DNA of 64,000 nt, from sequence record NC_047880.1; one strand, 5' to 3'. Below the pieces are notes generated by a model. It did no database searches. It was not told where the DNA came from and saw nothing but the letters and a program-made list of their open reading frames with translations. The translations under genes were made by a program, and so were the position numbers. Positions 15,403 through 55,322 of the stretch are shown piece after piece; the stretch's first letter is position 1; every line of letters begins with the position of its first letter.

Positions 15403-18400
15403 TTATTGATAGCGAACAGTGATAACAGCAGAGCCGAAAGCACGAGCATTGGTTCGATAGATCAAGACGTTTTCTGTCAGGTTATCATAAACCATTTTGC
15501 TGACGATAGGTCCTTTCTTACCATTGTCTCCAGTCACAGGCCATTGAGCACCATCGAATGCAAGCCACCCTTTGTTCACGTTACCTTGACTATCGGATGC
15601 AGCAGCAAACACCGCAGTACCGAATGACTGTCTGACAACGAAATATCCGTATTCATCAGTCTTAGTCGAGAGAACAAAAGTACCGCCAACGTTAGAACGT
15701 AAACGACTAGGCAGTTGAGCAAGTGCAGCGCTTATCGTAGTCAGACCGAACGGTGCAATACCGAATCGTGGGTATGACGAGAAGGCTTTCATGAAGTGTG
15801 TCTGCGTGAGTCTTTGCTGACCTTCAATATAGAGAACCTTAACACCAAAGTCTGTATCGTTAAGCAACAAACTTATAGCGAGACGACCAGTAGAGGAGTT
15901 AATCGAGATGCCTTGAACATCTACAACGTCACCCTTACTATTGGTTATCTGCCACAAGCATTTAGCACTCACATCTTCTTTTACGAAGGTGCCTGTACGA
16001 CCAAGCATTGCAGCCATTTGCATCGAGCTATCATCACGGACGTTTGTGAATCCACCGACTGTTAAGTCCTGTGGGAAACCAATTCCCGGACACGTAATCT
16101 CTTGTGTTAAGCTGATCGACGTGCGTTGTTCTGTGATGATACATTCCACCTGAACTGACTGTGGGTCTTTCGCTGCTTGGAAACGGAAGGAACCGTCTTG
16201 AGACAGAGAGAAGCCACTAACAGACTTGATTACGTTCCACTGGAATTTAACCGAGTTAGCATCAGGCAGTACGCTCGTACCTTTCTGACCAGAACGTCGC
16301 TCATAGTTCGCAACAAACTTATAGTCAGTGTTGGGTTCGATATTCGATGCAGGGTTTTCGATGAAGCCGCTGAGAATGGTGTTCTGCGTATTCAACTCAA
16401 CCGTGCGTGATGCAATGATCGTTTCGTCTGCAAGGCTCTGCGGGTTCTGTTTAGTGAACACCGCTCTTAGTCCAATAAGGCCATCAGACAGTTGAGACTG
16501 ACTAATGAACAGATGACCATTGAGAGGATCTACTGAAACACCATCGACGTTTGTCTCGTCACCGATAGACCAGATAGCATCAGAAGTAACGAGTTCATCA
16601 TCAGGGTCAATGATTACGCGCAACTGGAATGGGATGTACCAGCGACCATTCTCATAACCAATCTCTGGGTTTCTATCAGACACATCCCACACAATATCAG
16701 GACCGATGATACCGATTGAACGCAGATACGTGTTAGCCTGTACGAGATAGACGAGCAAAGTCTTTTCAATCTGGTACTGGTCACACGTAAAGCGAGCACG
16801 AATCTCAACAGCACCATCAACGTTCTGACTTGGCGTTAGTGTGCCACTCGCATCAATCTCCGCAACACTGTCAGAAGTAGGTACAAGCATCTGACTTCCG
16901 TTCGGACCTGCTTTCACGTAGTAGTTATTGATGACAGCCCACTCTGAATCCACTTCAAGTTCGAATTGAGTCTTCGGAGTTTCTACATAGCTTCCATCAA
17001 GCGTTTTCGCTACACCACCTGTCTCATACATATTAACCAGTGTATAAGATTCGGAGAGTACATCAGCGCTGATCTGCGTTGCACCTTCAATGCGACTATT
17101 GATTATGTTGTTCACACTTTCTTTAGGCTGAGGTGTAACGATAAGGTCCATCTTGTTGCTGATACGGAAGAAACGCGCTTGCACCTGAGTGTATGTTACT
17201 TCATTGCACTTGCCTGTTTGCAGGATAGCACCATCAAAGTAACTGTTCTCAAGTTGAGTCAGATCACCAATGCTGTTAAACATAGGCAAGCGTGAGATTT
17301 CCATTGCACGGAAGTCTTTGTAGCTGTCAGGCGTACGGCCTTCGACAATCTCAACGATAGCTGTACCGCTGTAACGACCAGGAGAGAACTGTAGGACCTT
17401 GTACTCGTCTGTGTCTTTATCAGCCCAAATACCAGACCACTGTGCAGCAGTCACATACTCCTGAGTACCATCAACATAAGTTGCGAGCAGTCGGCAGAAC
17501 GTGCGCTTCCTGTCAAACATCTCGGTCGGACACTCAATCGTTATTGAATCAACAAGTGAGCGTGAAGGTGTCAGTTGCAGATCACGGTAGTTCGTTATCG
17601 TCGTGCCGTCATAGTCATACGTCATTGAGATACGTGCAGAGCCGTGTAAATCACCTTGGAAATACAGAACGTACTCTTTGAACTTACGTGCTAACACCGG
17701 GTCATACACTTCGTTCGTTGATACGGTTACGTTCAGCGTTACCCAGCGAGCGTAGTCAGGATTATCAGGGTCGAACTGTAACGGGTCTTCACCAGCTTGA
17801 ACAGCATCCTGCTGGAGTTGAATCGTTCGCGCTCTTGCTTCTTCTTTCGCGGACTGTGAAGGCAGATACTCGACAGTCACAGCAGCCGCAGCAGCGTACA
17901 CAAGTCCGTTATTCCATAGACAAGTTGTAGGCAGCATCAGCGTACTGGCGCTACTGATAGAAGGTGCAGAACGCAGATCGACAGAACGAGGTATCATGAT
18001 GATATCATCAATCAGGAAGTTCTTGCTGAACGTTTTAGTCTCGGCAACGTCGATATACGCGAAATGCAGAGAGTATAGCACTGCATCACCATCCACTAAA
18101 GGTGCCGTGAACTGGCCCGTAGATTGCTCAACGGCAGGCAGGGAATGCACATCGTTAGCGTCATCTTGGCTACTAAACCAAATGCCAGATACTTCTGTAT
18201 AAGCGACAATGATCGACGGATCACGCGCTGCAATCTGTGCATCAGTAGCCGAAGCGAGAACATACAAAGCCATTGCTTTAGGTCGAATGATATCGCGCTC
18301 AACAATGGTGCTTGGGATAACGATATCGACTGTGGCAAGATTGATAGCAGGCGCTTTCATTGTCACTTGCTTCACAGCCTGAACAGGTTCACCTTCACCG

Positions 18401-23368: not shown

Positions 23369-25129
23369 TTAGAAATTCTTTCTTTCTACGTTCGTGTACA
23401 GAGTATCGTACGGATCAGAGTACAGCTCGGAACTACGCTGTGCGCGAACAGTCACATAACCTGTGTGACGATTGAACGCAATGATTTCAACCGTAGGCTG
23501 CTTCGGCTTAATCGTCGCATAGATAGGCGCGTTAAGCATCGGCTCGTCTGCAAGCAGTTTATCAACAGCAGGCAGTTGGGCAGCAGACAGCTTAGGTAGA
23601 TTGAAACGAATCTCTGCGCGAGTACGACCGAACGCCAGACGGATAGAACCTTTAGTCAGTTCACCACCGTTGTTGCGCAGATAGTTCATGATACGACGCG
23701 CAACACCTTCCACTTGGCCACGAGCAGCAGGGTCCATAAGACCGTCGAAGCTGATAGCGCCAGTAGGCTGGTTGATTGACAGATGCAGACCAGTGTTGAA
23801 GTAACCCTCTGCTAACAGGCGATACACTTCACGCGCAATCTCTGCGTTGTTCGTTGAGATGATTGGCGTTCTGATCTCAGGTGGATTCTCTTTCTGAGGC
23901 TCTGTGTACTCAACAGCACCAGAAGAATAACCCATGCTAATCTTTTTCGCTTTAGCATATTTCGCTTGCAGCAGGCCACTTGCGCGAATGATCACTGAAC
24001 CATTCTTAGACAGGTCATACAACTCGTCTGTACTGAATGTACTGAACAAGAAATAGTCCTGAGGAATAGCCATACGTGATACTGCTTCGAGTGCTTTCTT
24101 CTGCGCGTCTTTAATCGTTTCACCAAACACGATACGACTGCGATTCGGCTGAGCAGGACTGACAGGGAAGAACGCGCCGTACACAACACGACTATCTTTC
24201 TTAATCGGTTGTTCGGATTTAACCTTCTTGCCACCAGCAAGAGGAGGTAGCTTAACACCAACGAGCTTGCCTTTGGTGATAGCTTTGTTCGCAACAACAG
24301 GCTTCAATGCGTTGAGCAGTTTCGACAGGTCAGCAGCATCAAGCACCTTCTCCAGAGGAACAGCTAAGTTCTGCGGGAGATAGTGTTTCTTGCGGAACAT
24401 GTAGATGACCGTGTCTTTCTTCAACTGAATCGGTGTTGCCATGTTACGGCCAACGACACCAACAGGTGAGAACGTATTTACTTTATCAGCAGCAACAGAA
24501 CCGAACTCTTTATCGAACACGGACTGGCCAATGATGTTAGCAACACGCAGATGACCACGAAGCGTAAACACAATCTTCGGTTCATCTTTCAGACGCAGTT
24601 CATAACGATCGCGGTTGAGATACACAAGGCTGTATTTATCACCCTTCTCAAGTTCGAGATCGTATTCATCGGACGCATCATCGAAGTGTACTTTCTTACC
24701 TTGATAGGTAGCATACACACGAGGACCAGCAGACTCAGAAGCAATCTGCATTGCTTTACCGCTATTCGAAAGCGCTACAGCAAAGTCCGTTACAGCGTTT
24801 TGCATCTCCAGTGTAGAAGATACATGACGCTCAGGTTGAGGTGACCCGATTTCCAAATGCACAGCGCTTGAGCTGGACATGAACACGCTTTTGCCTGTTG
24901 GATTAACGCCAGCGAAGTGCATATCGCTGATACGTTCAATCTCATTAGCATTAACGTGAGGCATCGAGATAGATACACCAGCAGCAAAGTCAAAGATTTC
25001 ACCTTGACGCCAAGCATATCCGATGTTGTTTGAACTAAGTCCGATAAACGCATCGCCCACTAAGCGAACGGATGTCGGCACGATACCCAAGTCACGAATG
25101 ACGGGGTTCAGCTTTGGTGAGATAATCAT
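23369..25129 (-). CDS. Hypothetical protein, possibly head-internal (586 aa)
   Basis: Long ORF; several S-X-S motifs in the first 133 aa followed by a domain shared with three other proteins in the window. Confidence 0.7.
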   Translation of the reverse strand: MIISPKLNPVIRDLGIVPTSVRLVGDAFIGLSSNNIGYAWRQGEIFDFAAGVSISMPHVNANEIERISDMHFAGVNPTGKSVFMSSSSAVHLEIGSPQPERHVSSTLEMQNAVTDFAVALSNSGKAMQIASESAGPRVYATYQGKKVHFDDASDEYDLELEKGDKYSLVYLNRDRYELRLKDEPKIVFTLRGHLRVANIIGQSVFDKEFGSVAADKVNTFSPVGVVGRNMATPIQLKKDTVIYMFRKKHYLPQNLAVPLEKVLDAADLSKLLNALKPVVANKAITKGKLVGVKLPPLAGGKKVKSEQPIKKDSRVVYGAFFPVSPAQPNRSRIVFGETIKDAQKKALEAVSRMAIPQDYFLFSTFSTDELYDLSKNGSVIIRASGLLQAKYAKAKKISMGYSSGAVEYTEPQKENPPEIRTPIISTNNAEIAREVYRLLAEGYFNTGLHLSINQPTGAISFDGLMDPAARGQVEGVARRIMNYLRNNGGELTKGSIRLAFGRTRAEIRFNLPKLSAAQLPAVDKLLADEPMLNAPIYATIKPKQPTVEIIAFNRHTGYVTVRAQRSSELYSDPYDTLYTNVERKNF

Positions 25130-26686: not shown

Positions 26687-27134
26687 ATGAGTCGATGATA
26701 TCCAGGGCTTGCTCAACGATAGGTCGAAGTTTCTTATCAACCTTGTTGAGCGCTTTCTCTGCCTTGAACCACTTACGCTCACGGGTCAGGACTTCATCAT
26801 AGTCGGTCAACATTGTCTTGACCTTCATGACGAACCATTCAACGTGTTGCTCGCGGCCAGTCTTTCCTTTGACATACTTCATGATATCAACGAAGTCTTT
26901 CGGCTTGCCCAGAACACCAGCTTCTTCCATTGCTTCTTTAAGCGCAGAATCGAGTGGTGTCATTCCTTTCTCTACGCCGCCTTTGGGTAAACCCCAATTG
27001 CCTGCGTGAGTAGTACGAATGAGAAGAACTTCAATCGTACCGTCTTTCTTTTTACGGTATGGGATTACTCCGGACTGCTGTCGAGGCTTTTTCTCAAAAG
27101 GCATCTTAGCAGAGAGGGACACATTGAGCATCAT
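26676..27134 (-). CDS. Nudix hydrolase
   Basis: Nudix box GGVEKGMTPLDSALKEAMEEAG; QQSGVIPYR and WGLPKGG as in DIPP/Ap4A-like Nudix enzymes. Confidence 0.92.
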   Translation of the reverse strand: MMLNVSLSAKMPFEKKPRQQSGVIPYRKKKDGTIEVLLIRTTHAGNWGLPKGGVEKGMTPLDSALKEAMEEAGVLGKPKDFVDIMKYVKGKTGREQHVEWFVMKVKTMLTDYDEVLTRERKWFKAEKALNKVDKKLRPIVEQALDIIDSYGL

Positions 27135-37625: not shown

Positions 37626-38297
37626 TTAACCCTCTACGACAATGAGCACAGGACGAACAGCTTCATCCAGCTTGAGGAACGTTGCGCCTACGAGATAACC
37701 ACCTTTCTCTACTTGCTTAACGACCGCTTTCTCAAGGTCTGTTTCCCACTTGTCACGCTGATTTGATTTGTAGGGTTCAAACGTTTCGGAAGCATCGTAG
37801 TAGTTATACGTTTCACCAGTAGGGAATGGGATACGCGCTAAGAATTGCAGACGATTGCAGTTCTTCATCGGTGTCTTGCGCAGTTCTTTCGTCAGCTTAA
37901 CGTCTTCAGGCTTAGAGCCGGGCACAGCTTTGAATGGCAACTTTGGTTGTGCTTCTTTCGGAGCAGCAGGCAGTTTCTCACGCGCTGGCGTATTCTTATC
38001 AGTAGCTTTCTTAACACGAATGCCACTAACAGTTCCAGTGAATGGACGACTGCGGCCTAACAGAGAACGAGCACCAGCAGCATCAACTTGAAACACGACA
38101 GAGGGATCATCACGGTGCAGAACATAGAACACATTACGTTTTGCAGCTTTGATTCCGAACACATCTTTCTCGTCGATATCCGCTTCATAGTCTTTGTTCT
38201 CGAGGGCGACTTTGCGTTTACCTTCGAAGCGATACCAATCGCAGTCGAGAATTGCTACTTGCGGCTTGCGGGCACTTTCGCTAAGAAAAATAAGCAT
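37626..38297 (-). CDS. Hypothetical protein, possibly head-internal (223 aa from MLIFLSES)
   Basis: Start reassigned to ATG 38297 (RBS GGAG, downstream of the terminator); N-terminal S-E-S followed by the shared domain. Confidence 0.7.
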   Translation of the reverse strand: MLIFLSESARKPQVAILDCDWYRFEGKRKVALENKDYEADIDEKDVFGIKAAKRNVFYVLHRDDPSVVFQVDAAGARSLLGRSRPFTGTVSGIRVKKATDKNTPAREKLPAAPKEAQPKLPFKAVPGSKPEDVKLTKELRKTPMKNCNRLQFLARIPFPTGETYNYYDASETFEPYKSNQRDKWETDLEKAVVKQVEKGGYLVGATFLKLDEAVRPVLIVVEG

Positions 38298-41690: not shown

Positions 41691-42104
41691 TTAGTCGAGA
41701 CGTATGCGAATTAACGTGGAAGACTCTGAATCAATGAACTCGTCATTTTCATCATCGGCCTCTTCGTCATCTTCACCAAAGTCGAAGTCATCATCAGATG
41801 ATTCTTCATCAGTGTTAATGTCGTCCACTTCGTCGTCGCCGTACATTGACTCGGAACGTTCTTCCTCGGCGTCAAGTTCTAAGGCAGAAGAGAGAGCCGT
41901 AACAGCAGTTGTCATTCCGCTTGCGCTACTGAAAGAATCAACTAAGCACTGTGCTTCGTAGTTCTCGGTCAGTTGGCACTCAAGGAATTGATCTGAATCT
42001 GGCGCACAAGCAGCTTGCGCAGCAAGTCGAGCAGCGTCAGCCCAGTTACCATCACGAATCGCAATTAATGCCAATGCAGCTAAGGAACCAGATAAGGTCT
42101 TCAT
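41691..42104 (-). CDS. Acidic head-associated protein (137 aa)
   Basis: Follows the capsid gene; D/E-rich tail with RSES and DSES motifs. Confidence 0.7.
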   Translation of the reverse strand: MKTLSGSLAALALIAIRDGNWADAARLAAQAACAPDSDQFLECQLTENYEAQCLVDSFSSASGMTTAVTALSSALELDAEEERSESMYGDDEVDDINTDEESSDDDFDFGEDDEEADDENDEFIDSESSTLIRIRLD

Positions 42105-42117
42105 GTATGGTCCTCAG

Positions 42118-42124
42118 AAATTAG
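42118..42124 (-). promoter_or_regulatory. CTAATTT candidate late-promoter motif
   Basis: 14 nt upstream of ATG 42104, immediately before the GAGGA RBS. Confidence 0.45.
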
Positions 42125-42159
42125 GGCAACGTTATGCTGCCCTTTGCATTAGAACTCGC

Positions 42160-43260
42160 TTAGCCACGAACCGCTTTAGCCACGGAACGAACGTTAGCCA
42201 GGGTGAAGCTGAAGGTGCTAGACAGCAACCAGCCGCGGTCAGTGTTACCCTGGTTAGCGCCAGACGTTGGAGTAGACTGGGTGCCGCCACGAGTGGTGTA
42301 CATCGCGTGGTAGTCCTGGTCAGCAATAACGTACAGCTCACCCTGTTTCAGAACGATGTGCTCTGGTGCGCGCATACCATCGGTCAGCAGTTCCATACCC
42401 AGCAGGGTACCCAGGCGGCCGGTGATCAGCAAGTCATACTTAGACACTGGGTCCAGAGCAGAACTGAACTGGTCGTTACCGACGATATCGTTCCAGTAGT
42501 CATACGCCATCACAGCGGTTGATACTGGCAGCGGCCAGGACGCAACAGAATTTTTCAGAGTAGACAGCAGACGAGGAGTCAGGTCACCGTGAACATAAGT
42601 CACAGGGTTCTGAATACCAACTGCTTGGTCACACGCACGTTTCCACAGACGGTCTTCTGCAACCATGATGGAAGTCAGACCATCCTGTTGAGCGCGGTCC
42701 AGCAGATCGCCGTTGATCTGGTCCAGGTCCATTTTGCTGACGCGAATGTTGGATTTCAGTTCAAACTCAGCAGGCGTGTAAACACGACCGCGGAATTGGT
42801 AGTAACCCATGTCAGTAGGACCAGTAGCGATGATTGCTTCTGATTGGTGAGTTTTCAGTTCGATACGAGCAACGTCGCCTTGACGAACAGTTGCGCCTTT
42901 ACAAACTTTACGCAGAAGACCAGCACGTTCAGCACGGTCTTCGATAGAGCCAACGATTGAAGCACCCAGTGAAGCCCACTTAGCGCCAGACTGATCTGCA
43001 ACAGCTTCTGCCAGCAGTTCAGTTTTCTCTTCGTTGGTCAGGCCGTTAGAAGCAGCAGACTGGCTATGAACCAGTTCACCGTTCTGGAAAGCCTGCATCA
43101 TGCGAGTGATGTTAGACACCAGGTCTTTCTGCGAGTAAGCATTCAGCTCACCGGTAGACTCAGACAGTGCGAGTTCGCCTTTGCCGCCGAAACGCAGTTG
43201 TTCAATCGGGTCGCCGTTACGCAGAGTTACTTTCGCGCCGCGCATTAAGGAATTTGACAT
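42160..43260 (-). CDS. Major capsid protein (366 aa)
   Basis: Strong codon bias, AGGAG RBS, head-module position and an HK97-like pattern (P.EFEL..NIRV..MDL; GRLGTLLGMELLTD). Confidence 0.85.
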   Translation of the reverse strand: MSNSLMRGAKVTLRNGDPIEQLRFGGKGELALSESTGELNAYSQKDLVSNITRMMQAFQNGELVHSQSAASNGLTNEEKTELLAEAVADQSGAKWASLGASIVGSIEDRAERAGLLRKVCKGATVRQGDVARIELKTHQSEAIIATGPTDMGYYQFRGRVYTPAEFELKSNIRVSKMDLDQINGDLLDRAQQDGLTSIMVAEDRLWKRACDQAVGIQNPVTYVHGDLTPRLLSTLKNSVASWPLPVSTAVMAYDYWNDIVGNDQFSSALDPVSKYDLLITGRLGTLLGMELLTDGMRAPEHIVLKQGELYVIADQDYHAMYTTRGGTQSTPTSGANQGNTDRGWLLSSTFSFTLANVRSVAKAVRG

Positions 43261-43320
43261 TGTTTGCTCCTGAGAATTTTATCTCGTAGTTTCAGTTCAA
43301 TCAGTCACGGTGCGCGACGA

Positions 43321-44028
43321 TTAAGCGCCGTAAGAAGAGGTGGTTTCGACGATCAGGTAACCGCGATCAGAGGTCGGTGCCTGCTTGATGATCAAGCCTT
43401 TCAGCTCAGTACCAGCGCCACCGATGGTCAGTTTACCGTTCGGGCCCAGTGAAGGGTGCAGAACGTTATCAGCAGACCAGTCAGCATTGGCATCAAACAT
43501 AGAGGTAGCAACGTTACCCAGTTTGATATAACCAACGCGGCCTTCGATGTTGGATGGCAGACCACCGATTGGTGCGTCAGCAGTGTAAGAACGCGCTTCG
43601 GTCACAGTCAGCTCGTAAGCATACTGGATGAAGACTTTCTTACCGATGTCAGATGCGTGGAAATACAGATCAGCACCCTGAACACCGACTTTGCCAGCAG
43701 CAGTAGGAGCAGCGTTAGCTTCCTGTTCTGCTTTAACGCCGTCAACTTTAACCAGCAACTGGCCAGCTTCTGGCAGACGAGACGCGGTGAATTTTTTGGT
43801 GGCATCAACAACGAATTCTTCGACGCGGTTCTGGAACGCTGGTGGCATGTTACGTGCCAGAGCGAAACCTGCGAATACTTCGTCAGCAGCACCGGTAGAC
43901 AGACGCACGAAGGATTTACCACCTTCACGAGCCCAAACCAGAGCAACACCTTCTTCGTGGATTACTTCGCCCGGCAGCAGATCAGCTTCCTGGGTCTGTA
44001 CGATAGCAGTAGCGTTTTGAAACAACAT
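43321..44028 (-). CDS. Head decoration / capsid-stabilising protein (235 aa)
   Basis: Highly biased codons; lies between the scaffold-like gene and the capsid; EEGVALV and FAGFAL resemble decoration proteins. Confidence 0.6.
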   Translation of the reverse strand: MLFQNATAIVQTQEADLLPGEVIHEEGVALVWAREGGKSFVRLSTGAADEVFAGFALARNMPPAFQNRVEEFVVDATKKFTASRLPEAGQLLVKVDGVKAEQEANAAPTAAGKVGVQGADLYFHASDIGKKVFIQYAYELTVTEARSYTADAPIGGLPSNIEGRVGYIKLGNVATSMFDANADWSADNVLHPSLGPNGKLTIGGAGTELKGLIIKQAPTSDRGYLIVETTSSYGA

Positions 44029-44081
44029 AATTAAATTCTCCGATAAGAGAGGATTAAAGTCAACTGATTGCTACGCGACGA

Positions 44082-46157
44082 TTAGCCGCGCAGACGTTTC
44101 AGTTTATCTTCGAATGAGCCAGTGGAAGCTGAACTCTGAGATTGAACATTAACAGGAGCATGTTCCTGATTCAGCAGATCGTTTGCAGAGTTGTTAATCG
44201 GTTGAGCGACAACAGCCTGCTGAACTACAGTCTTCGCAGCAGTAGCAGCGGTAAGAGTACCGGCCGCAGCATTAATGCTTTCGGAGATTTCGTTCTGAGC
44301 TACTTCGGATTTCGACATCAGGTCCATAGCTTTAGACAACGCTACTGCCAGATAGTCTTTACCGTGAGCAATGAACGCACGTTCAATCAATGCGCGTGGC
44401 TCTTTCAATCCGGCGGATTGCAGTGTGCTGCACAGTGACTCAACGATTGGGTTGCGAGCATCACCCCAGAAGTTTTTAACGATACCCAACTGAGCAGCAG
44501 ACAACGCAGAGATAAGGCGCTCTTTGTTTGCGTCAACAGCTTCGGTGATGGTGGCGTTAACGGTTTCAGTCGTTTCGCTGATACGAGCGTCGGACTGAGC
44601 AACCAGCAGTTTGTCAACCGGCATTTCGATTGTGAATGGCATGAAGCCAAACGAATTGCAAGTTTCAGAAACACCGTTCTGATTCAGAGACACGCTGATT
44701 GCACGAATGAAATTATCAGTTGCGAAGTTTTTCGCAGCGGATTCTTCACTGATTGCGTTTGATACAGACGCGAACGTTGCGCGAGCGATCGGCATACCGT
44801 CGTAGTTCATAAACACTGAATCTACTTTACCGCCGGTAGCGCGAGACAGGCTGACCAGAGCAGGGTCCAGATTGCCGTGCTGCGCTTGCGCTGCGCTGAG
44901 ACTGTCGAAGGTGCAGGACACGGCGCCGCTTTCAGATTCGATATCTTCGTCGTCGTCGAGGTCCAGATCATCTTCATCCAGGTCTTCGTCTTCGTCAAAG
45001 TCGAGGTCTTCATCGTCTTCGTCTTCCAGATCGTCTTCGTCATCGCCGGAGCCGCTTTCAGAATCAATGTCTTCGTCGTCGAGGTCTTCTTCATCGAGGT
45101 CCTCGTCGTCCAGATCATCTTCATCGTCAATGTCGTCTTCGTCGAAGTCTTCATCGTCTTCGTCGTCAGAACCAGATTCGGAATCAATGTCCTCATCTTC
45201 GTCTTCATCGGCGTCGAAGTCTTCGTCATCCAGATCGTCTTCATCCAGATCATCTTCATCGAAGTCTTCTTCGTCGTCATCAGAAGATTCGGAATCAACG
45301 TCGTCGTCTTCTTCAACGTCGTCGCTATCCAGATCTTCGTCGTCCAGAATGTCGATATCGCTATCGTCATCGCCGCTTTCGGATTCGATATCCAGCAGGC
45401 CGCCTGAACAGTGAGCGCAGAATACAGGCTCTTCATCAGAGCTTACAGTGAATGGCTGTTCGCAGTTAGCGGAGCAGCTATACATGTGCGCTTCAACTTC
45501 ATCACCTTCAACGCTTGAAGACAGGGCTTCAACGCTTGAAGACAGGGCTTCAACGTTTTCTTTCGGCTCGTTGCTAGTGACTTTAGCACCAGTGTACGGG
45601 TCGAAGTTTGCGTGAGTAGCAGCGTTGAAAGAACCACTACCAGACAGCGCGGTGAATGCGTGTGCGTTGCTCAGAGCCTGCACGAAGTTGCGTTGAGCTT
45701 CTTCGGCGGTAGCACCTGTTGCAACTAAACCTTCGTGCTCGACAGTCTGGCTGGCGGAAGCGGATTCAGCTAAGAAGCTTTGAACGCGCTCGTCAGTGAT
45801 TTCAGACAAGTCCGCAGAGCACGACGGGCAGCAACCCTGGATGTTCGCAGAGCTATCGCTGATAACGTGGCTACCACAACCATCCAGACAGATGGTGTAA
45901 TAAGCTTTGACGTCAGCAGAGCTAGACTCTGACTGGAACTCGGCTTTTGCAACCAAATCAGGGCGTTCCACCAGCAGTTCAGAACCGCCGTTAGGATTGT
46001 AGAGGTCAACAGAGCTATTGGAAGCGAATGCTACGCCATCTTTCGATGCGTAAAACATTGTGTTCTTACCGACAGCAGTTTGACGAAAGTTCTCTACAGC
46101 CTGATTATGGTTTTGACCGACACACAGGATACCCGCAAGACGGGAAATCTTTGGCAT
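44082..46157 (-). CDS. Prohead scaffold/core-like protein with Zn-ribbon motifs and a long acidic tract (691 aa)
   Basis: Cys pairs (CLDGC/CPSC; CSANC/CAHC), about 150-aa D/E tract punctuated by (I/V)(D/E)SES, and a helical C-terminus; directly upstream of the decoration and capsid genes. Confidence 0.6.
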   Translation of the reverse strand: MPKISRLAGILCVGQNHNQAVENFRQTAVGKNTMFYASKDGVAFASNSSVDLYNPNGGSELLVERPDLVAKAEFQSESSSADVKAYYTICLDGCGSHVISDSSANIQGCCPSCSADLSEITDERVQSFLAESASASQTVEHEGLVATGATAEEAQRNFVQALSNAHAFTALSGSGSFNAATHANFDPYTGAKVTSNEPKENVEALSSSVEALSSSVEGDEVEAHMYSCSANCEQPFTVSSDEEPVFCAHCSGGLLDIESESGDDDSDIDILDDEDLDSDDVEEDDDVDSESSDDDEEDFDEDDLDEDDLDDEDFDADEDEDEDIDSESGSDDEDDEDFDEDDIDDEDDLDDEDLDEEDLDDEDIDSESGSGDDEDDLEDEDDEDLDFDEDEDLDEDDLDLDDDEDIESESGAVSCTFDSLSAAQAQHGNLDPALVSLSRATGGKVDSVFMNYDGMPIARATFASVSNAISEESAAKNFATDNFIRAISVSLNQNGVSETCNSFGFMPFTIEMPVDKLLVAQSDARISETTETVNATITEAVDANKERLISALSAAQLGIVKNFWGDARNPIVESLCSTLQSAGLKEPRALIERAFIAHGKDYLAVALSKAMDLMSKSEVAQNEISESINAAAGTLTAATAAKTVVQQAVVAQPINNSANDLLNQEHAPVNVQSQSSASTGSFEDKLKRLRG
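44872..45414. repeat. Low-complexity acidic coding repeats (DDEDLD...IDSESG units)
   Basis: Recurrent tcttcatcgtc-type triplet runs; five S-E-S-delimited units. Confidence 0.85.
45506..45555. repeat. Perfect 21-bp tandem duplication (encodes ALSSSVE twice)
   Basis: cttcaacgcttgaagacaggg x2 plus cttcaacg. Confidence 0.9.
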
Positions 46158-46234
46158 GGTAAAACCCTCATTGATAGAAGTCGTTGTTTTCGACGTATTA
46201 AAATTAATGTATGCAGAAAAAATAGAGGTATTTT

Positions 46235-47347
46235 CTATACTTTCCTGCTCTCAATATCTTTCTGCGGAACGTAGCGATTTTCGAAGTATTTCGCTACTAC
46301 ATCAAACCCATTTAACGTATAAACGTTACGCAGGCTAGCACCCCACACCATTAACTCAGCCAGTGTTGCAAAATGCTCAGTCGGTACTGATCGCACTTGC
46401 CGCGTGAGAGAATCTGGGTGTATCTTCTTACCGCGAATCGCCTGTTCGAATCGCATACGCTCTACGTTACGCAGCATCGTATGGTCAACAAAGTGGGCTA
46501 ATTCGTGGGTGATAACGTGAGCCACTGACAGGCTATTGAAGCCACCGAAATACTTAATAAGCTGTTTCGGGTCAATGGTTATCGCGCCGTACATAAAGCC
46601 ATGCACTGGATAGGTAACGATGTGACTACCGATATCCGAGTTCTCTTTCGACAGACCAACGTATAGACGCTTGAATGGCAGAGGGAAGTTAAGACCAATG
46701 CCGGGCATCACGTTTTCCTGTATGTCTTTCAACACGTAATCAGGAGGACTCACGCCATACTTCTCAAGCTTAGCGCGTGGCACTTGCAAATCATCCAGAC
46801 CAAATACTTCTAAATGCACTTTACCGCACTTAGGTACAGGCTTAACTGCATAGTTATTAGCAGAGCCACCAGAGTAAATAGCTGGAGCATATACAAGCGG
46901 CTTTAAGTTGCCGAAGTCAGGCATATCATCAGCGCGAATACGTTTAGCACGGGCTGTAGCAGCATCGTCTTCCTCATAGGAAGTATCTGATACTGGCTCA
47001 GGTGCGGGTGCAGAAGGCTCAGGCTTTTTAGTCAAGACAACAGGTTTGGGCTTGGGTTTCTGCACAGCTTCGGGCGCTTGTTCTGCAACTTCTGATGGTG
47101 TAAAATTAAAATTTGCAGAAAATAAAGCGTTAGGAGCAGCAGTAAATTTACGACTATTTGCTATGATCATTTCGCCCGAATCACCACTGATTGCAACAGC
47201 TCCAGGGTACTTAGGGTGAGCGATATAGAAGAGAGAATCGTTAGCTTGAATCAGACCAACAACCTCGCGGGGCTCCATGTGAACCCCGTTTGAGATTAGC
47301 TGACCTTTCCCCAAATAACGATAGAAGGAATAATCAGATATGTCCAT
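46235..47347 (-). CDS. Putative zinc metallopeptidase (370 aa)
   Basis: VITHELAHFVD (HExxH) and a downstream EHFA; N-terminal shared domain followed by a Pro-rich linker. Confidence 0.65.
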   Translation of the reverse strand: MDISDYSFYRYLGKGQLISNGVHMEPREVVGLIQANDSLFYIAHPKYPGAVAISGDSGEMIIANSRKFTAAPNALFSANFNFTPSEVAEQAPEAVQKPKPKPVVLTKKPEPSAPAPEPVSDTSYEEDDAATARAKRIRADDMPDFGNLKPLVYAPAIYSGGSANNYAVKPVPKCGKVHLEVFGLDDLQVPRAKLEKYGVSPPDYVLKDIQENVMPGIGLNFPLPFKRLYVGLSKENSDIGSHIVTYPVHGFMYGAITIDPKQLIKYFGGFNSLSVAHVITHELAHFVDHTMLRNVERMRFEQAIRGKKIHPDSLTRQVRSVPTEHFATLAELMVWGASLRNVYTLNGFDVVAKYFENRYVPQKDIESRKV

Positions 47348-47348
47348 A

Positions 47349-48131
47349 TTAACCCATTCTCATTAAGTGCTCTTTGTAAGTAGCAGCACATGCGAAGGCT
47401 GGGTCATCAACAGAACTACACTCGAAGCCTGTAAGAACCTTACAGTCACGATAAGCAAGACGACCAGTGCGAGCGTCGAGATGCGTAGGCTTGTTGAAGG
47501 ATGTATGCGAGCAGAAGTTTCTGGCGCGTGGGGTAACGAGTTCACCGCAGATAGAACATTTATAAGCACGGTAGGTAGTACCCTTGCTGTACGTGTTCAG
47601 GTCACCGCTAAGAATTCGGTCACAGCGTTCTGGACAACGAGTTCTGTCAAACGCCAGCAGCAGAGTCAGACGAGCATGATTGCCACGGAAGTTTTTCAGC
47701 TTAGACATATCGCTATCGAAGATAATGCCCATAGCCTGACGAATATCTTTGTTGTTGTGCTCAATGAACGTCGGCTTACCGATAAACGTTTTATACGCCA
47801 ATCGGCCTTGGTCTGGGTTGAATGAAAGCCATTCTTGCAGACTGAATGCGTCACCGTTAGTGTTCGGCAGTTCAGTGATATTCACAGGAACAGGTACTAC
47901 GATGTAGTCACGAATATCGCGTGAGGTGTTGTAGATCTCAGCGGCTTTCGGCAACCACACGTTAACGTCGAGATTGAAGGAGCCTGTCTGGATTCCGAAG
48001 CGAGAGGCATCAACACGAATCGACTTAGCTGTTTTGCTAACGTCTTCTTTGTGCATATCAATCGCGTTCATCCCTACAAGACCCACATCCGATACGTCAA
48101 ACGACTCGGAACGAACGGGCTTGCCCATCAT
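47349..48131 (-). CDS. Prohead maturation protease (260 aa)
   Basis: GKPTFIEHNN (His), YSKG (Ser) and FECSSVDDPAF pattern of phage prohead serine proteases; head-module position. Confidence 0.75.
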   Translation of the reverse strand: MMGKPVRSESFDVSDVGLVGMNAIDMHKEDVSKTAKSIRVDASRFGIQTGSFNLDVNVWLPKAAEIYNTSRDIRDYIVVPVPVNITELPNTNGDAFSLQEWLSFNPDQGRLAYKTFIGKPTFIEHNNKDIRQAMGIIFDSDMSKLKNFRGNHARLTLLLAFDRTRCPERCDRILSGDLNTYSKGTTYRAYKCSICGELVTPRARNFCSHTSFNKPTHLDARTGRLAYRDCKVLTGFECSSVDDPAFACAATYKEHLMRMG

Positions 48132-48557: not shown

Positions 48558-49415
48558 TTAACCTCTCAATGCACTACGCGCCCATGACTTAGCAAACGCA
48601 AGAGTCATACGGCTTGGGTTCTGCAATTTAACTTCGCCCTTATGCACGGCAGTGAACGGTTCATTCGGGTTCGTACCACGACCAGAACGATACGCTGCTT
48701 CATTGAATCCATCAAACAAGGTAACTACCCAGCCTGTAGATTTGTCAGAGCATTCACCACATGCAGGATCCCAGCTTACTTTGCCACAAGGCTTTCCACC
48801 AGATGATACAACGTAACTCAAACGATCAGAATCGCTGTACACGTTTTTGCTTTTGTTCGCTTTGAACGTGATACGGGATGCTGATTCAGAACGAGGCATC
48901 ATCTTTTGTTTCAGCGCTTCGACGTCGATCGAGGACCAGTACGATTCAAACAGAGTTACCAGCTTCTGTTCAATAGGCAGGTCCACTGCATTCATCTGCA
49001 CGATAGTGGATGATGCGTCATCGATCACACGGTTAACAAAGTATGCACCAAGCACGATTGGAAGTTGCACACCTTGAGAACCTGCTGTCAGACCAGAGCG
49101 CTTGCAGTAGATATCAGCAAGACCAATAGAAAGACGCACAAGAACCTTGAACGTCTCTTTTTCAGTTGTTCCAGACAGCTCCGTAAGAATGCGTGAGGCA
49201 ATCGCAGGCACTACTGTGCGTTTTGCAACGCTGGTGATATCTTCGGGTTTGAAACTTGTGCCGAGTCGCTTACGCGCTGCGAGTTCAAAAGCATTCGTCA
49301 GACTAGCTTTGTTCGCTGTCGTCAGTGCTTCGCTCAACTTCTCCAACGTGCGCTCCGTCCCGTTGATGATCGACACTGGCTTCTGAGCCATTTTCCGTTT
49401 CGCTACTTTCGCCAT
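48558..49415 (-). CDS. Hypothetical protein (285 aa)
   Basis: AGGAG RBS inside the upstream gene; helical N-domain, PRSESAS linker and a beta C-domain. Confidence 0.75.
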   Translation of the reverse strand: MAKVAKRKMAQKPVSIINGTERTLEKLSEALTTANKASLTNAFELAARKRLGTSFKPEDITSVAKRTVVPAIASRILTELSGTTEKETFKVLVRLSIGLADIYCKRSGLTAGSQGVQLPIVLGAYFVNRVIDDASSTIVQMNAVDLPIEQKLVTLFESYWSSIDVEALKQKMMPRSESASRITFKANKSKNVYSDSDRLSYVVSSGGKPCGKVSWDPACGECSDKSTGWVVTLFDGFNEAAYRSGRGTNPNEPFTAVHKGEVKLQNPSRMTLAFAKSWARSALRG

Positions 49416-50520
49416 TGGAGACTGTCTCCTGTTGTTGCGGCTGTTGCAGTAAAGCTAACAAGCCAGAGTTCGTGATTGCAGCAGTCACGTCTTCGTTTCG
49501 GTGAAGACTTAATTGCGCAAGGTAGTTAAGAGCTTGTTCAACAAGACCCAGATTGCGACAACCCCAATAAGCGAGATCGTAACATAGGTCTAAATTAATA
49601 GAAGTCTGGTCAAACAAGAAACTTTTTGGATTCTGTTGTACAGTGCTGATCCCTTGAATAGCGAAAGAAACTGCACTGACATTATCACCACGACGATAGA
49701 AGATATCGCCAAGCATCGCATAACATTCAACGCGGTCAGGTCTGTATGCAATAGCTTTATAACAGGCGTCGATTGATTCCTGAGTGAAGCCTTGCATGAA
49801 CAGAGCTTTAGACAGTTCAAGGTTAGCAATCGAAACGTAATCGTTCCAGCGAGCAATGCCCTGTAGACGAGCTACTTCGCGGCGAGCATCATCAAGCAAG
49901 TCCGCCTGTCCGCCTTGCACTGCATAGCACAGTTCACGCGCATAGTAGAAACTGCAACGATCTTCATGAGGCCAATCACCGACGTCACGCGCAAGCTCCA
50001 TGAGATAACCACGAGGCTTACTGTAATCAGGGAAGTGGTCAGTTGCAAACTCTGCACGTACTGTAGCAATGCGTTGAGGATTCTTGCTCAACAGGACTTC
50101 ATGCGCACGATAGCGCCAGCCATACGAACGACGGCGATACGCCTTCATTTGATCGTAGTGACTATCACCGTTACGCATCAGAATCCAAACAGCTTCGGCT
50201 TGATCAATATCTTTGATATCTCGAAGCGACTCAACCCAATCAGGATCGTCAAATCGCTCGTCGATATCAAGCCAGACAACAAGGTCATCTTCTGAGAAAG
50301 GTGTAGCGGCCAGTTCACGACTTGCAGCGAGATTGCGTTCTTCCGACACGTCAAACATGTGGTAGATATTGCTGTGTGCGAATCGTGAGATAATGTCGGT
50401 AGTTGAGTCCGTACTGCCTGTATCAACAATGCTGATAGCATCGGCTTTCGATACATGCTGCAAGAATTCAGCCATGTTCTTTTCTTCATTACGGCAGATA
50501 GCCGCTACACAAATTCTCAT
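49303..50520 (-). CDS. Glycosyltransferase family 2 with TPR C-terminus (405 aa)
   Basis: ICRNEE, IVDTGSTDST, WLDIDE (DxD) and YR.HE motifs, then TPR-like helices (YKAIAYRPDRVECYAMLG). Confidence 0.88.
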   Translation of the reverse strand: MRICVAAICRNEEKNMAEFLQHVSKADAISIVDTGSTDSTTDIISRFAHSNIYHMFDVSEERNLAASRELAATPFSEDDLVVWLDIDERFDDPDWVESLRDIKDIDQAEAVWILMRNGDSHYDQMKAYRRRSYGWRYRAHEVLLSKNPQRIATVRAEFATDHFPDYSKPRGYLMELARDVGDWPHEDRCSFYYARELCYAVQGGQADLLDDARREVARLQGIARWNDYVSIANLELSKALFMQGFTQESIDACYKAIAYRPDRVECYAMLGDIFYRRGDNVSAVSFAIQGISTVQQNPKSFLFDQTSINLDLCYDLAYWGCRNLGLVEQALNYLAQLSLHRNEDVTAAITNSGLLALLQQPQQQETVSNGESSETENGSEASVDHQRDGAHVGEVERSTDDSEQS

Positions 50521-53441: not shown

Positions 53442-55322
53442 TTAGCTGGCGATAGGGTCTTTATTCACAGGATAATCTTCCACAATATCGTAGACTTTAT
53501 TGAACAGCTTCGGAGCCATGTCTTTGACATGTTCTGCGTAGTCGAACAGGTTCTGTTTACGAGCGCGGTTGATACGCACCTGACGAACTTCGTCTGGACT
53601 ATTCGTGATATCGTACACGGTGTACGTCACGATGTTATCAGACTTCTCGTGGGTACTCACTTTGACGATAAGCCAATCGCGATTCAGTTTAACGTCAGCA
53701 CGGAATTTAACTACGTCACCTTCCTCTGGTTCTTCTGCACGTTGAGACGGCGTGGATTTGTTTTCGGCGGCAATCTTCTTCGCAGTCTCGGCAGCTTCTT
53801 TCTCTGCTGCGGCCACATCGGAATCACCATCTTCATCAGCTCCTGTTTCGTCTACGGCGTCAGAGGCATCGGCGTCTTCGCTATCTTCATCTGCTGAATC
53901 ATCTCCTGCGTCGTCGTCCTCGCTATCATCCAAGGATTCGTCTCCGGAATCGTCATCAGATTCAGCGTCGGATTCTTCGTCATCAGCATTATCGACGTCG
54001 GGATCACTATCGCTAGTATCTTCTTCTTCATCGTCAGACTCCTCTTCCTCAGGTTCTTCCTCTTCTGCGTCGGGCTCAACGGCAGCAGGCTTAGCTTTCT
54101 TCGAACGCACTTTAGACGGTGGAGGTGTTTCTTCTTCATCGTCTTCGGGTTCATCCATGTCAGACAAGTCGAACTCAGGATCAACTTCATCGTGAGTATC
54201 ATCACCGCCAAACAGAGAGCCGATAGTGTCTTCGATGTTATGCGTGTCACCAGCAAAAGGACTTCTGCCAATGATATCACCCATGCGCTGTTCGTTCTCG
54301 TCAATCTCAACATCAAGGTCAATATCGTGATCGAAGTCTTCATCCAGATCATGTTCCAAATCTTCTTCCTCTTCGAGTGCTTCATGCTCGATGATTCGGG
54401 AGTTACGACGACGCTTGTCCAGTTCAGGTGAATCCTGATAGATGGTATTAACGTCACGCTTAGGTGCTTCGATTTCACCACTGCGAATCTTGCGGCGCAT
54501 CTCTTTCAGTTCAGCTTCTTCGGCTGCATTAGCATTACGCTGTGCCGTCGAAATTTCTTTCTGCTGCTGTTTACGTTCAAGAATACGCGCACGATCTGCA
54601 AGGCGAATTGCTTCGCGCTCTTCCGCTTCGGAACGACGACGATTCTTTTTAGCGGACTTGCGATATGCAATCACAGCCTCAGCGTCAACAGAACCTTCTG
54701 GCCATTCTTGATACGGAATGATGTTCGTGTCTGCAACGAATTTATCGAACTCGTCATCAGGCACAAGCAGATACAGACCATCAGTATTTACAAGCACACC
54801 GCCTTTACCCTGACGTTTGAAGCGAACGCCAATCATATCATTGCGATGAAACTTGACGATACCTTTAGAAGTCTTCACAGCGTAATCATTCGTTGGTACC
54901 ATGCGCCATTGATAGCTCGCAAAGTTGATACCATTGACTGACTCGTTAGGGACCTTCTTCGGTTGGAATCGTGCCTGATCGAAGTTAGTGCGATTGATAA
55001 GACGTGAAAGTGTTTTAGCACCAGCAGTCTTCACACGACCTTCGTTCTTGACGATCTCAGGAGTCTTGCGCATCTTCGAACTACGATCCATCAAGAACTT
55101 ACCTGTCTGCATATCGAGAGGGAAATCAATATGCGGGATATCTGGGAAAATCAAAGTATAGCGGCTGCCGTTACGCAGAGGCAGTATGCCGAAGATATCG
55201 CCCTCACGAATCATTCGCTTATGAGTGCGCTGCGATACTTCTTTGCCACGGGACCCTGTGAACTTGAGCCACGCGTACTTCGATACTGCATCATCATAAG
55301 ATGCGGATTCGGAGAGTACCAT
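53442..55322 (-). CDS. Acidic, possibly head-internal protein (626 aa)
   Basis: MVLSESAS start, two copies of the shared domain, a coiled coil, a long D/E tract and a C-terminal SH3-like domain. Confidence 0.7.
   Translation of the reverse strand: MVLSESASYDDAVSKYAWLKFTGSRGKEVSQRTHKRMIREGDIFGILPLRNGSRYTLIFPDIPHIDFPLDMQTGKFLMDRSSKMRKTPEIVKNEGRVKTAGAKTLSRLINRTNFDQARFQPKKVPNESVNGINFASYQWRMVPTNDYAVKTSKGIVKFHRNDMIGVRFKRQGKGGVLVNTDGLYLLVPDDEFDKFVADTNIIPYQEWPEGSVDAEAVIAYRKSAKKNRRRSEAEEREAIRLADRARILERKQQQKEISTAQRNANAAEEAELKEMRRKIRSGEIEAPKRDVNTIYQDSPELDKRRRNSRIIEHEALEEEEDLEHDLDEDFDHDIDLDVEIDENEQRMGDIIGRSPFAGDTHNIEDTIGSLFGGDDTHDEVDPEFDLSDMDEPEDDEEETPPPSKVRSKKAKPAAVEPDAEEEEPEEEESDDEEEDTSDSDPDVDNADDEESDAESDDDSGDESLDDSEDDDAGDDSADEDSEDADASDAVDETGADEDGDSDVAAAEKEAAETAKKIAAENKSTPSQRAEEPEEGDVVKFRADVKLNRDWLIVKVSTHEKSDNIVTYTVYDITNSPDEVRQVRINRARKQNLFDYAEHVKDMAPKLFNKVYDIVEDYPVNKDPIAS

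Follow-up and report, generated by a model that had tools for sequence, protein, structure and literature searches.

A serine-x-serine motif in the head proteins of Erwinia phage vB_EamM_Y3 as a probable prohead-protease cleavage and packaging code

The head module and its motif-bearing proteins

The stretch of DNA investigated here (the window, 64,000 nucleotides of sequence record NC_047880.1) is 100% identical to Erwinia phage vB_EamM_Y3 (KY984068.1, 261,365 bp, genus Sasquatchvirus). It corresponds to bases 62001-126000 of the Y3 record, and every gene in it, and hence every window feature given below, lies on the minus strand. The window harbours a head module composed of the protease gene Y3_143, Y3_142, the scaffold-like Y3_141, the structural Y3_140, the major capsid gene Y3_139 and Y3_138. 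A sequence-only reading of the window had noticed that the pattern S-x-S, mostly as S-E-S, recurs in these head proteins and at the N-termini of dispersed proteins, and had proposed it as the cleavage code of the prohead protease. This motif, its conservation and its probable function are described here. Coordinates are window positions unless marked as record positions.

Y3 belongs to the PaBG/Lu11/Dickeya/Erwinia group of jumbo phages (PMC7412058). Its whole genome was compared with those of AD1, Yoloswag, fHe-Yen9-02, JA29 and PaBG, for which the median protein identity to Y3 lies between 67% and 32%, and 160 orthologue sets were aligned. AD1, Yoloswag, fHe-Yen9-02 and JA29 are referred to as the four relatives and make up, together with Y3, the five phages of the enterobacterial clade; orthologues are listed in this order. 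All four relatives keep the gene order protease, Y3_142, scaffold-like protein, Y3_140 and capsid. Expected genome-wide motif counts were obtained from within-protein shuffles, by which composition is controlled. No published description of an S-x-S or A-x-A-S code in this phage lineage was found in the literature, nor was any proteomics of fHe-Yen9-02.

The protease Y3_143 (47349..48131; 260 amino acids, aa) matched phrog_18299, 'head maturation protease' (E 1.8e-131), and its fold is predicted to be of the gp21/assemblin type. The AlphaFold model, with a mean predicted local distance difference test score (pLDDT) of 80.6, had T4 gp21 as its best structural match in a wide VIA-align search (5jbl_A; Z 9.2, root-mean-square deviation 3.1, 140/165 residues), followed by the herpesvirus proteases of varicella-zoster virus (1vzv_A, Z 5.6), human cytomegalovirus (8j3s_A, Z 4.9) and Kaposi's sarcoma-associated herpesvirus (Z 3.4). 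H125 and S182, the latter within N-T-Y-S-x-G, are invariant in 23 homologues, and their spacing resembles that of gp21. H209 is nearly invariant and lies in a cluster with the invariant C192, C195 and C207 (aa 192-209). This cluster resembles an inserted zinc finger, and a PDB profile search matched it to C2H2 zinc fingers only; H209 could be the third catalytic residue instead of a zinc-finger ligand.

The N-terminus of the protease is disordered (residues 1-15, pLDDT < 50) and carries VRSESF (aa 6-11, 48099..48116; VRSES at aa 6-10), a candidate self-cleavage site. The consensus S-x-S-F was found at this place in the 23 homologues, down to 47% identity, with E, H, K, T, Q, R, A or Y in the middle. 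The distant homologues P0034 and P0031 have no N-terminal S-x-S and no capsid gene within 10 kb of the protease gene.

The major capsid protein Y3_139 (42160..43260; 366 aa; phrog_2522, E 3.9e-120) contains three S-x-S within aa 1-69 (0.8 expected, P 0.03) and none in the mature part. Site 1, ALSEST (aa 31-36, 43153..43170; ALSES at aa 31-35), is placed within the predicted propeptide, and site 2, VHSQSA (aa 64-69, 43054..43071; HSQS at aa 65-68), at the predicted boundary between propeptide and mature protein. In the capsid model (pLDDT 81) the only low-confidence stretches (pLDDT < 50) were aa 1-9 and aa 66-72, of which the latter is the sole disordered internal linker and coincides with site 2. 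Residue 4 of phage G gp27 (PDB 6wkk, deposited chain of 280 aa) aligns to residue 74 of the Y3 capsid protein, and the HK97 body therefore starts right after site 2; the phage G paper gives no capsid cleavage site. Among 118 homologues the linker at aa 60-80 contained S-x-S in 68 (31.7 expected) and S-x-S-[ASGTK] in 50 (11.5 expected), and site 1 was S-x-S in 87/117 homologues (34.8 expected). Across Y3 and the four relatives site 1 reads LSES, LSQS, LSES, LSKS and LSES, with LSSS also found among orthologues, and site 2 reads HSQS, HSHS, HSES, VSES and VSES. No conserved glutamate was found in the linker in the homologue alignment.

The scaffold-like acidic protein Y3_141 (44082..46157; 691 aa) is the main predicted substrate. 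It contains 27 S-x-S where 10.0 were expected (P<0.0005), and 10 sites of the extended form [FILV]-x-S-x-S-[ASG] described below, or 13 if A or M is allowed at the first position. The motifs listed for it by the sequence-only reading were all found: FQSES, IESES (twice), VDSES, IDSES (twice), VQSQS and a duplicated ALSSS. Five sites of the form (I/V)-(D/E)-S-E-S-(G/S) split the acidic core (aa 257-411, 44925..45389) into blocks of approximately 30-42 residues, and the same punctuation is present in the four relatives and in the environmental phage L087; the scaffold-like orthologues keep the sites while the acidic repeats differ in number, spacing and sequence. FQSESS (aa 74-79, 45921..45938) corresponds to VQSQSS, FASESS, FASESS and FQSESS in the four relatives. 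VQSQSS near the C-terminus (aa 671-676, 44130..44147) is (V/I)-x-S-Q-S-S in all four, and the scaffold-like protein of phage NCTB has MQSQSS at the matching place.

Other features of Y3_141 were also noticed. The duplicated ALSSS belongs to a 7-residue unit, VEALSSS, repeated exactly in tandem at 45510-45548; the relatives have one ALSS-like copy. Two Cys4 zinc-ribbon-like motifs are present, C-x3-C ... C-C-x2-C near aa 90-113 and C-x3-C ... C-x2-C near aa 228-252. RefSeq and PHROGs give the protein as 'ATPase', a label that seems to stem from the acidic repeats; Pfam gave no ATPase domain.

At the other end of the module, the 137-aa helical acidic protein Y3_138 (41691..42104), also a predicted substrate, contains 5 S-x-S (1.75 expected, P 0.018). 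IDSESS (aa 124-129, 41718..41735) stands right before a conserved C-terminal 8-mer and is retained in the relatives in the forms IESDSS, AQSSS, IPSNSS and FESSSS. ERSES (41844-41861) was present as listed earlier; it is not conserved, and is probably a chance match. The same holds for the start of Y3_121 (27649), listed as MSMLSLS, which becomes MLSLS with the annotated start. Outside the window, three conserved sites are found in the portal protein Y3_006 (aa 38, 49 and 535), and two more in the 70-aa protein adjoining it. S-x-S is thus a mark of the capsid, protease, scaffold-like and 137-aa proteins, as had been claimed, and of the portal in addition.

Conservation of the motif and the N-terminal leaders

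In the Y3 genome SES was found 40 times (22.4 expected, z 3.6), and plain S-x-S 478 times against 439 expected (z 2.0), an enrichment of only 1.09-fold. The extended motif [FILV]-x-S-x-S-[ASG] was present in 59 copies (24.0 expected, z 9.5) in Y3 and in 47-61 copies in the four relatives, where approximately 22-25 were expected. Control motifs with threonine or alanine, reversed or re-spaced, were flat at about 1.0-fold. Two sources outside the definition of the motif displayed the same enrichment: the NCTB locus with 12 extended motifs (2.7 expected), and L087, whose capsid is 48% identical, with 6 (2.2 expected, z 2.7) as well as 23 of the shorter S-x-S-[ASG] (9.2 expected). The proteome-wide enrichment was weaker in PaBG (40 against 29.9), and in phage RSL1 neither the serine nor the alanine form of the motif was enriched.

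Both serines were identical in all four relatives for 34 of the 283 S-x-S aligned (12.0%), compared to 8.1% for S-S, 7.1% for S-xx-S and 4.2% for S-xxx-S. In the conserved cases a hydrophobic residue stands two positions upstream of the first serine and a small one follows the second. The middle is free: with both serines unchanged, orthologues have E, Q, K, H, S, T, R, A, L or V there. When 287 a-x-b pairs were scanned for identical ends in the four relatives around a variable middle, S-x-S ranked first (23 against 10.5 expected, z 3.9), and none of the pairs L-x-E, I-x-E, S-x-E, A-x-E and G-x-E displayed excess conservation. The motif and the selection on it, with its free middle, are thereby established, and judged by these alignments the conserved unit is hydrophobic-x-S-x-S-(A/S/G), not S-E-S.

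The sites have specific positions, established from the same sequences, in disordered linkers and at N-termini. The sequence-only reading had suggested that positional enrichment be checked, and 15 of the 59 extended-motif sites were indeed located in the first 30 residues of their proteins, where 12% was expected (P 0.003). The pattern M-x(0-3)-hydrophobic(2-4)-S-x-S was found at 14 protein starts in Y3, at 7-11 in each of the four relatives and at 1 in PaBG, with 0-5 for control patterns; most of these N-terminal tags have S-L-S. Two types of leader were recognised. Type 1, M-x-I-F-V-S-L-S-(A/S/K), comprises 7-9 residues and is carried by Y3_133, Y3_193, Y3_195 (with S-L-A), Y3_205, Y3_206, Y3_208, the Nudix hydrolase Y3_120 and Y3_149, and in a looser form by the 1951-aa SNF2 helicase Y3_176. 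Type 2, M-x-x-I-K-L-N-L...S-E-S-(A/S), is approximately 16 residues long and is found on Y3_187, Y3_194 and Y3_196. All six serine codons are used at the motif, leucine codons are mixed, and no shared DNA was found upstream of the leader start codons, from which it follows that the selection is at the protein level; an origin of the common leaders in DNA or RNA was ruled out on the same grounds.

The leader MMLNVSLSAK of Y3_120 (27105..27134; MMLNVSLS in the earlier list) is MMINVSLSAK in AD1, MEIIVSLSAR in Yoloswag and MEIMISLSAK in fHe-Yen9-02. It is kept in four of the five phages of the clade and lost in JA29, and the Nudix domain follows from aa 21. Packaging of this enzyme is plausible.

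Four proteins contain a KMPT-N domain (PF20294): Y3_142 (46235-47347, domain aa 6-65), Y3_133 (37626-38297, aa 19-83), Y3_149 (53442-55322, aa 16-81) and Y3_116 (23369-25129, aa 138-200). In the last three S-x-S-A is followed by the domain 4-10 residues later, and Y3_142 has the domain without the motif. Y3_133, of the tail-tube cluster, starts with MLIFLSESA (38271..38297; MLIFLSES at 38297 in the earlier list), which is M-L-hydrophobic(3)-S-x-S-A in all four relatives with E, A, T or V as x. The leader MVLSESA of the 626-aa Y3_149 (55302..55322; listed as MVLSES at 55322) has the orthologues MHSLSA, MHSLSA and MLSQSA. In the 586-aa Y3_116, for which ALSNS and IASES had been listed and were both found, IASESA (aa 129-134, 24728..24745) precedes the domain by four residues. 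AD1, Yoloswag and JA29 retain S-x-S-A there, in fHe-Yen9-02 it is shifted, and FMSSSS (24866-24883) is a second conserved site.

The genes Y3_187 to Y3_208 (record 161268-174802) form a run of small, partly paralogous proteins bearing leaders. The inner-body paralogues of phiKZ offer a comparison, and the run may likewise encode internal or ejection proteins.

A serine-to-alanine change was found in more distant members of the lineage. In the 19-kb head region of Lu11 (JQ768459.1 28468-47538) A-x-A-S was present in 19 copies (3.4 expected, z 8.6), and S-x-S-[ASG] in 2 (4.5 expected). The alanine form occupies the places of the serine form: the capsid linker of Lu11 has VATASS in place of VHSQSA of Y3, its scaffold-like protein has 12 alanine-form sites (1.2 expected), the leader of Lu11_0068 is MKVYLAIAAS compared to MQIFVSLSS of Y3_193, and the protease N-terminus reads ALGF compared to SESF in Y3. 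The counterparts of Y3_138 in both Lu11 and PaBG carry A-x-A-S. PaBG is mixed, its scaffold having 8 A-x-A-S (1.2 expected; EATAS is present) along with 6 S-x-S-[ASG] (1.5 expected), and its portal has FEATAG where that of Y3 has FVSESS. The alanine form is confined to the head-region proteins of PaBG, and relaxed small-x-small was not enriched across its proteome (A-x-A-S 1.16-fold). These substitutions establish the co-variation across the lineage. Since A-x-A-S stands at the same places in Lu11, it is the small side chains that appear to be read and not the hydroxyls.

A proposed prohead-protease cleavage code and its alternatives

The function of the motif may be depicted as follows. S-x-S is probably the prohead-protease cleavage and packaging code of this phage, a variant of the T4 system, and on balance we favour hydrophobic-x-S-x-S-(A/S/G) as the recognition motif of Y3_143 with reasonable, though not high, confidence. 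Cleavage by Y3_143, the bond that is cut and the role in packaging are what we infer from the arrangement above. Y3_143 would remove approximately 68 N-terminal residues of the capsid protein at VHSQS|A, with a second cut within the propeptide, and would shorten itself at the N-terminus and the portal at its ends. The scaffold-like Y3_141 and the 137-aa Y3_138 would be cut into short acidic peptides. Leaders of 7-16 residues would be removed from two KMPT-N proteins, the Nudix hydrolase, the SNF2 helicase and the cluster of small proteins at record 161-175 kb, and both leader types probably also target their carriers into the prohead, like the capsid targeting sequence of T4. In this scheme the enzyme would read small side chains at two alternate positions, serine in the enterobacterial clade and NCTB and alanine in Lu11. 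The co-variation within the lineage is the strongest argument for a cleavage code.

The cut most likely falls after the second serine. Three observations point in this direction, none of them decisive. A-x-A|S of Lu11 would then mirror both the A|S bond of the herpesviruses and the small-x-E| register of phiKZ. Ala, Ser or Gly would stand at the new N-termini, whereas cleavage behind the first serine would leave Leu at the start of most leader-bearing proteins. Finally, the alignment with 6wkk begins two to five residues past S68 of capsid site 2.

Several observations weigh against Y3_143 as the enzyme or against the reach of the motif. The extended motif was defined after inspecting Y3, and approximately 24 of its 59 matches (~40%) are expected by chance, so that single sites such as those in Y3_112, Y3_180 and plus-strand open reading frames cannot be called. 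The relatives share ancestry and their enrichments are not independent, a problem lessened but not removed by the pair scan and by L087, NCTB and Lu11. The two serines are equally conserved (90/110 each), and the substitution spectrum cannot place the cut bond. Foldseek ranked 5jbl first for the protease model with a weak E of 0.15, no Pfam family matched Y3_143 at E <= 0.01, and the profile of the 23 homologues gave zinc-finger noise only in PDB, with no link to gp21. Tags are also found on proteins without a known link to the head, namely Y3_133 of the tail-tube cluster and plus-strand open reading frames near record 192-196 kb, and a conserved site lies in the tail-region protein Y3_112. 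Lastly, the head module contains Y3_142 as a second peptidase-like gene.

Y3_142 (46235..47347) combines the KMPT-N domain (Pfam PF20294, E 7e-28) with a zinc-peptidase-like HExxH, HELAH in the translation. Its gene lies between those of the protease and the scaffold-like protein and is present in all four relatives, and by this position and the HELAH the head module may hold a second peptidase. The least unlikely of the alternatives, although still an unlikely one, is that Y3_142 or a host peptidase cuts the motif while the gp21-like protease keeps a glutamate specificity. Its place within the head module would agree with this, as would S-x-S-A right before the same domain in the three other KMPT-N proteins. 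PaBG, in which no homologue of Y3_142 was found by tblastn, has the weaker motif enrichment and a single N-terminal tag. However, the head loci of Lu11 and PaBG have no homologue of Y3_142, and yet these phages have the alanine form at the same places in capsid, portal and scaffold. The N-terminus of the protease itself bears the motif across 23 homologues and co-varies with it, the capsid linker contains no conserved glutamate, and none of the x-E pairs displayed excess conservation.

Somewhat less likely again is that S-x-S is left uncut and serves as a docking or targeting strand, or that its serines are phosphorylated or are O-glycosylated by the GT2 glycosyltransferase Y3_146. The gene of the latter (49303-50520) is conserved beside the head module in seven phages (Y3, AD1, Yoloswag, fHe-Yen9-02, JA29, Lu11 and L087). 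Y3_180 ends in IFSASA, where a cut would remove one residue, and at individual sites docking without cleavage may apply. However, Lu11 and PaBG have alanine in place of both serines at the corresponding positions of capsid, portal, scaffold and leaders, so the hydroxyls are dispensable and a sequon for phosphorylation or glycosylation is excluded. Judged from these sequences, one recognition system for small side chains that drifts between serine and alanine would explain the patterns in Y3, Lu11 and PaBG, whereas a serine-modification sequon would not. The virion proteins of PaBG are moreover reported to undergo proteolytic processing, and its capsid protein to lose approximately 20% of its mass (PMC7412058). 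A cut computed at the position aligned with Y3 site 2 removes 18.8% of the PaBG capsid protein and one at site 1 removes 9.3%; the loss fits the position of site 2.

The sequence-only reading had left open whether the protease recognises S-x-S or the glutamate within S-E-S. The former fits the comparative evidence. The latter would place the cut after Glu in the manner of T4 (L/I-x-E) or phiKZ (S/A-x-E), the serines being a flanking preference, and is very improbable. It would agree with all characterised gp21-family proteases, which cut after Glu (PMC9026906), with the excess of SES in Y3, with the middle residue of the acidic scaffold core, which is always E, and with the preference of SPN3US for Ser at P1'. 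But at orthologous sites the glutamate gives way to other residues and the serines do not, also between phages whose proteases share 70-89% identity. AD1 has LSQS and fHe-Yen9-02 has LSKS at capsid site 1, Y3 itself has HSQS at site 2, the middle residue at the protease N-terminus may be H, K, T, Q, R, A or Y, and most N-terminal tags have S-L-S. Glutamate-specific cleavage was rejected on this variation among orthologues, and the lack of excess conservation of any x-E pair agrees. Equally improbable is chance or composition, whether through serine-rich low-complexity head proteins or alternating beta-strand patterns; plain S-x-S is hardly enriched, the expected chance matches are many and two listed sites are not conserved, but shuffles that control composition, flat control motifs, the first rank of S-x-S among 287 pairs, its recurrence in loci outside the definition and its specific positions speak against this.

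With cleavage by Y3_143 as the preferred reading, a wider proposal may be put forward more tentatively. It is possible that in this jumbo-phage lineage (Erwinia, Dickeya and Yersinia phages, NCTB, PaBG, Lu11 and environmental relatives) a protease of gp21 fold gave up glutamate for a small-x-small rule which drifts between Ser and Ala together with its substrates, and that a portable leader of 7-16 residues, ending in the motif, loads enzymes such as the Nudix hydrolase and the SNF2 helicase, and KMPT-N proteins, into the head, from which they would be ejected into the host. If true, a cleavage code without glutamate would be known for the first time in a gp21-family prohead protease, and the shift from Ser to Ala would be a natural case of co-evolution between protease and substrate. 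The packaged and ejected proteome of the group, including likely early-acting enzymes, would become predictable from sequence, and a very short tag would be at hand for loading foreign proteins into large capsids, as with the T4 targeting sequence. Database labels would be corrected as well, such as that of the scaffold-like protein, now 'ATPase'.

Two virion proteins of PaBG bear on the targeting of leader-bearing proteins into the head. The proteins identified by matrix-assisted laser desorption/ionization (Table 1 of PMC7412058) include the 221,162-Da helicase-like gp202 and gp83. The former was matched by mass to the 1969-aa orthologue of the tag-bearing Y3_176, and gp83 carries the long type of leader, with A-A-K-A where AD1 has S-E-S-A.

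Related systems and further sites

In T4, phiKZ, 201phi2-1 and SPN3US all known cuts follow Glu, and T4, phiKZ and SPN3US share short motifs, several sites in the propeptide and core or scaffold proteins that are fragmented; a 10-residue N-terminal leader targets proteins into the T4 head (PMC9026906, PMC5694885, PMC10052503). Y3 resembles T4 in the predicted fold of the protease (Z 9.2 to 5jbl_A), in the protease gene beside the scaffold and capsid genes, in the short motif, in a capsid propeptide with several sites, in a scaffold predicted to be cut into short acidic peptides, and in leaders of approximately 10 residues that end in the protease motif on unrelated proteins (PMC9026906, PMC5694885). 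It differs in that the presumed motif is small-x-small after a hydrophobic residue (S-x-S, or A-x-A-S in Lu11) with no Glu required, in that the leaders are short hydrophobic strands of the M-x-I-F-V-S-L-S type and not the T4 sequence, and in that Y3_143 has no detectable similarity to gp21 in Pfam or PDB profiles.

The proteases phiKZ gp175 (MEROPS S80, S/A-x-E) and SPN3US gp245 (A-x-E) likewise belong to jumbo myoviruses and have a small residue two places before the cut. Processing of capsid, portal and abundant internal or ejection proteins, redundant propeptide sites, self-processing of the protease and small residues favoured after the cut are common to both, and are predicted for Y3. 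In Y3, which is of a different jumbo lineage, the residue at the cut would be Ser or Ala instead of Glu, and the likely self-cleavage site is N-terminal whereas those proteases cut their own C-terminus.

The maturational protease of herpesviruses, assemblin, has the consensus (V/L/I)-x-A|S. It is similar to Y3_143 in predicted fold and in small residues flanking the cut with a hydrophobic residue upstream, and A-x-A-S of Lu11 contains the same A|S pair; in contrast, the Y3 clade has serine at both small positions and the hydrophobic residue two places before the first of them. Bacterial type I signal peptidase follows the -3/-1 'A-x-A' rule, with small uncharged residues at alternate positions, Ala and Ser being interchangeable. 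The likeness is an analogy of specificity only, in the small residues at two alternate positions; the enzyme is unrelated, and Y3 has internal sites in cytoplasmic head proteins. A signal-peptide reading of the leaders was rejected on account of their shortness and lack of charge; the charged region and the long hydrophobic one of a signal peptide are both missing.

The remaining sites lie outside the head module. The sequence-only reading had regarded a few S-E-S in tail or membrane proteins as probably chance, but not all sites beyond the head are so, as a conserved one is present in the 1508-aa tail-region protein Y3_112. Its LPSQSA (aa 689-694, 17848..17865) corresponds to IPSDSA, IPSASA, IPSQSA and IPSPSA in the orthologues, such that (L/I)-P-S-x-S-A is present in five phages with four different middle residues in a protein of the baseplate or tail region. 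The site may reflect processing outside the head, or coincidence.

The 285-aa protein Y3_145 (48558-49415) has PRSESA (aa 174-179, 48879..48896) before its conserved C-terminal domain. PRSES had been described as a domain linker, and this is borne out by S-x-S-(A/S) in the four relatives and by the PaBG homologue, which begins directly past the linker position. The annotated start of the gene, at 49337, lies 78 bases inside the longest open reading frame. An upstream extension is present in the orthologues of Yoloswag and fHe-Yen9-02, which would begin with MLISLSQ, and is missing from Y3 and AD1.

Finally, Y3_180 (record 153828-154658), the gene of which adjoins the head-to-tail joining gene, has a lysine-rich N-terminus and has IFSASA at its extreme C-terminus; the ending is identical in AD1 and is IFSSSS in Yoloswag.

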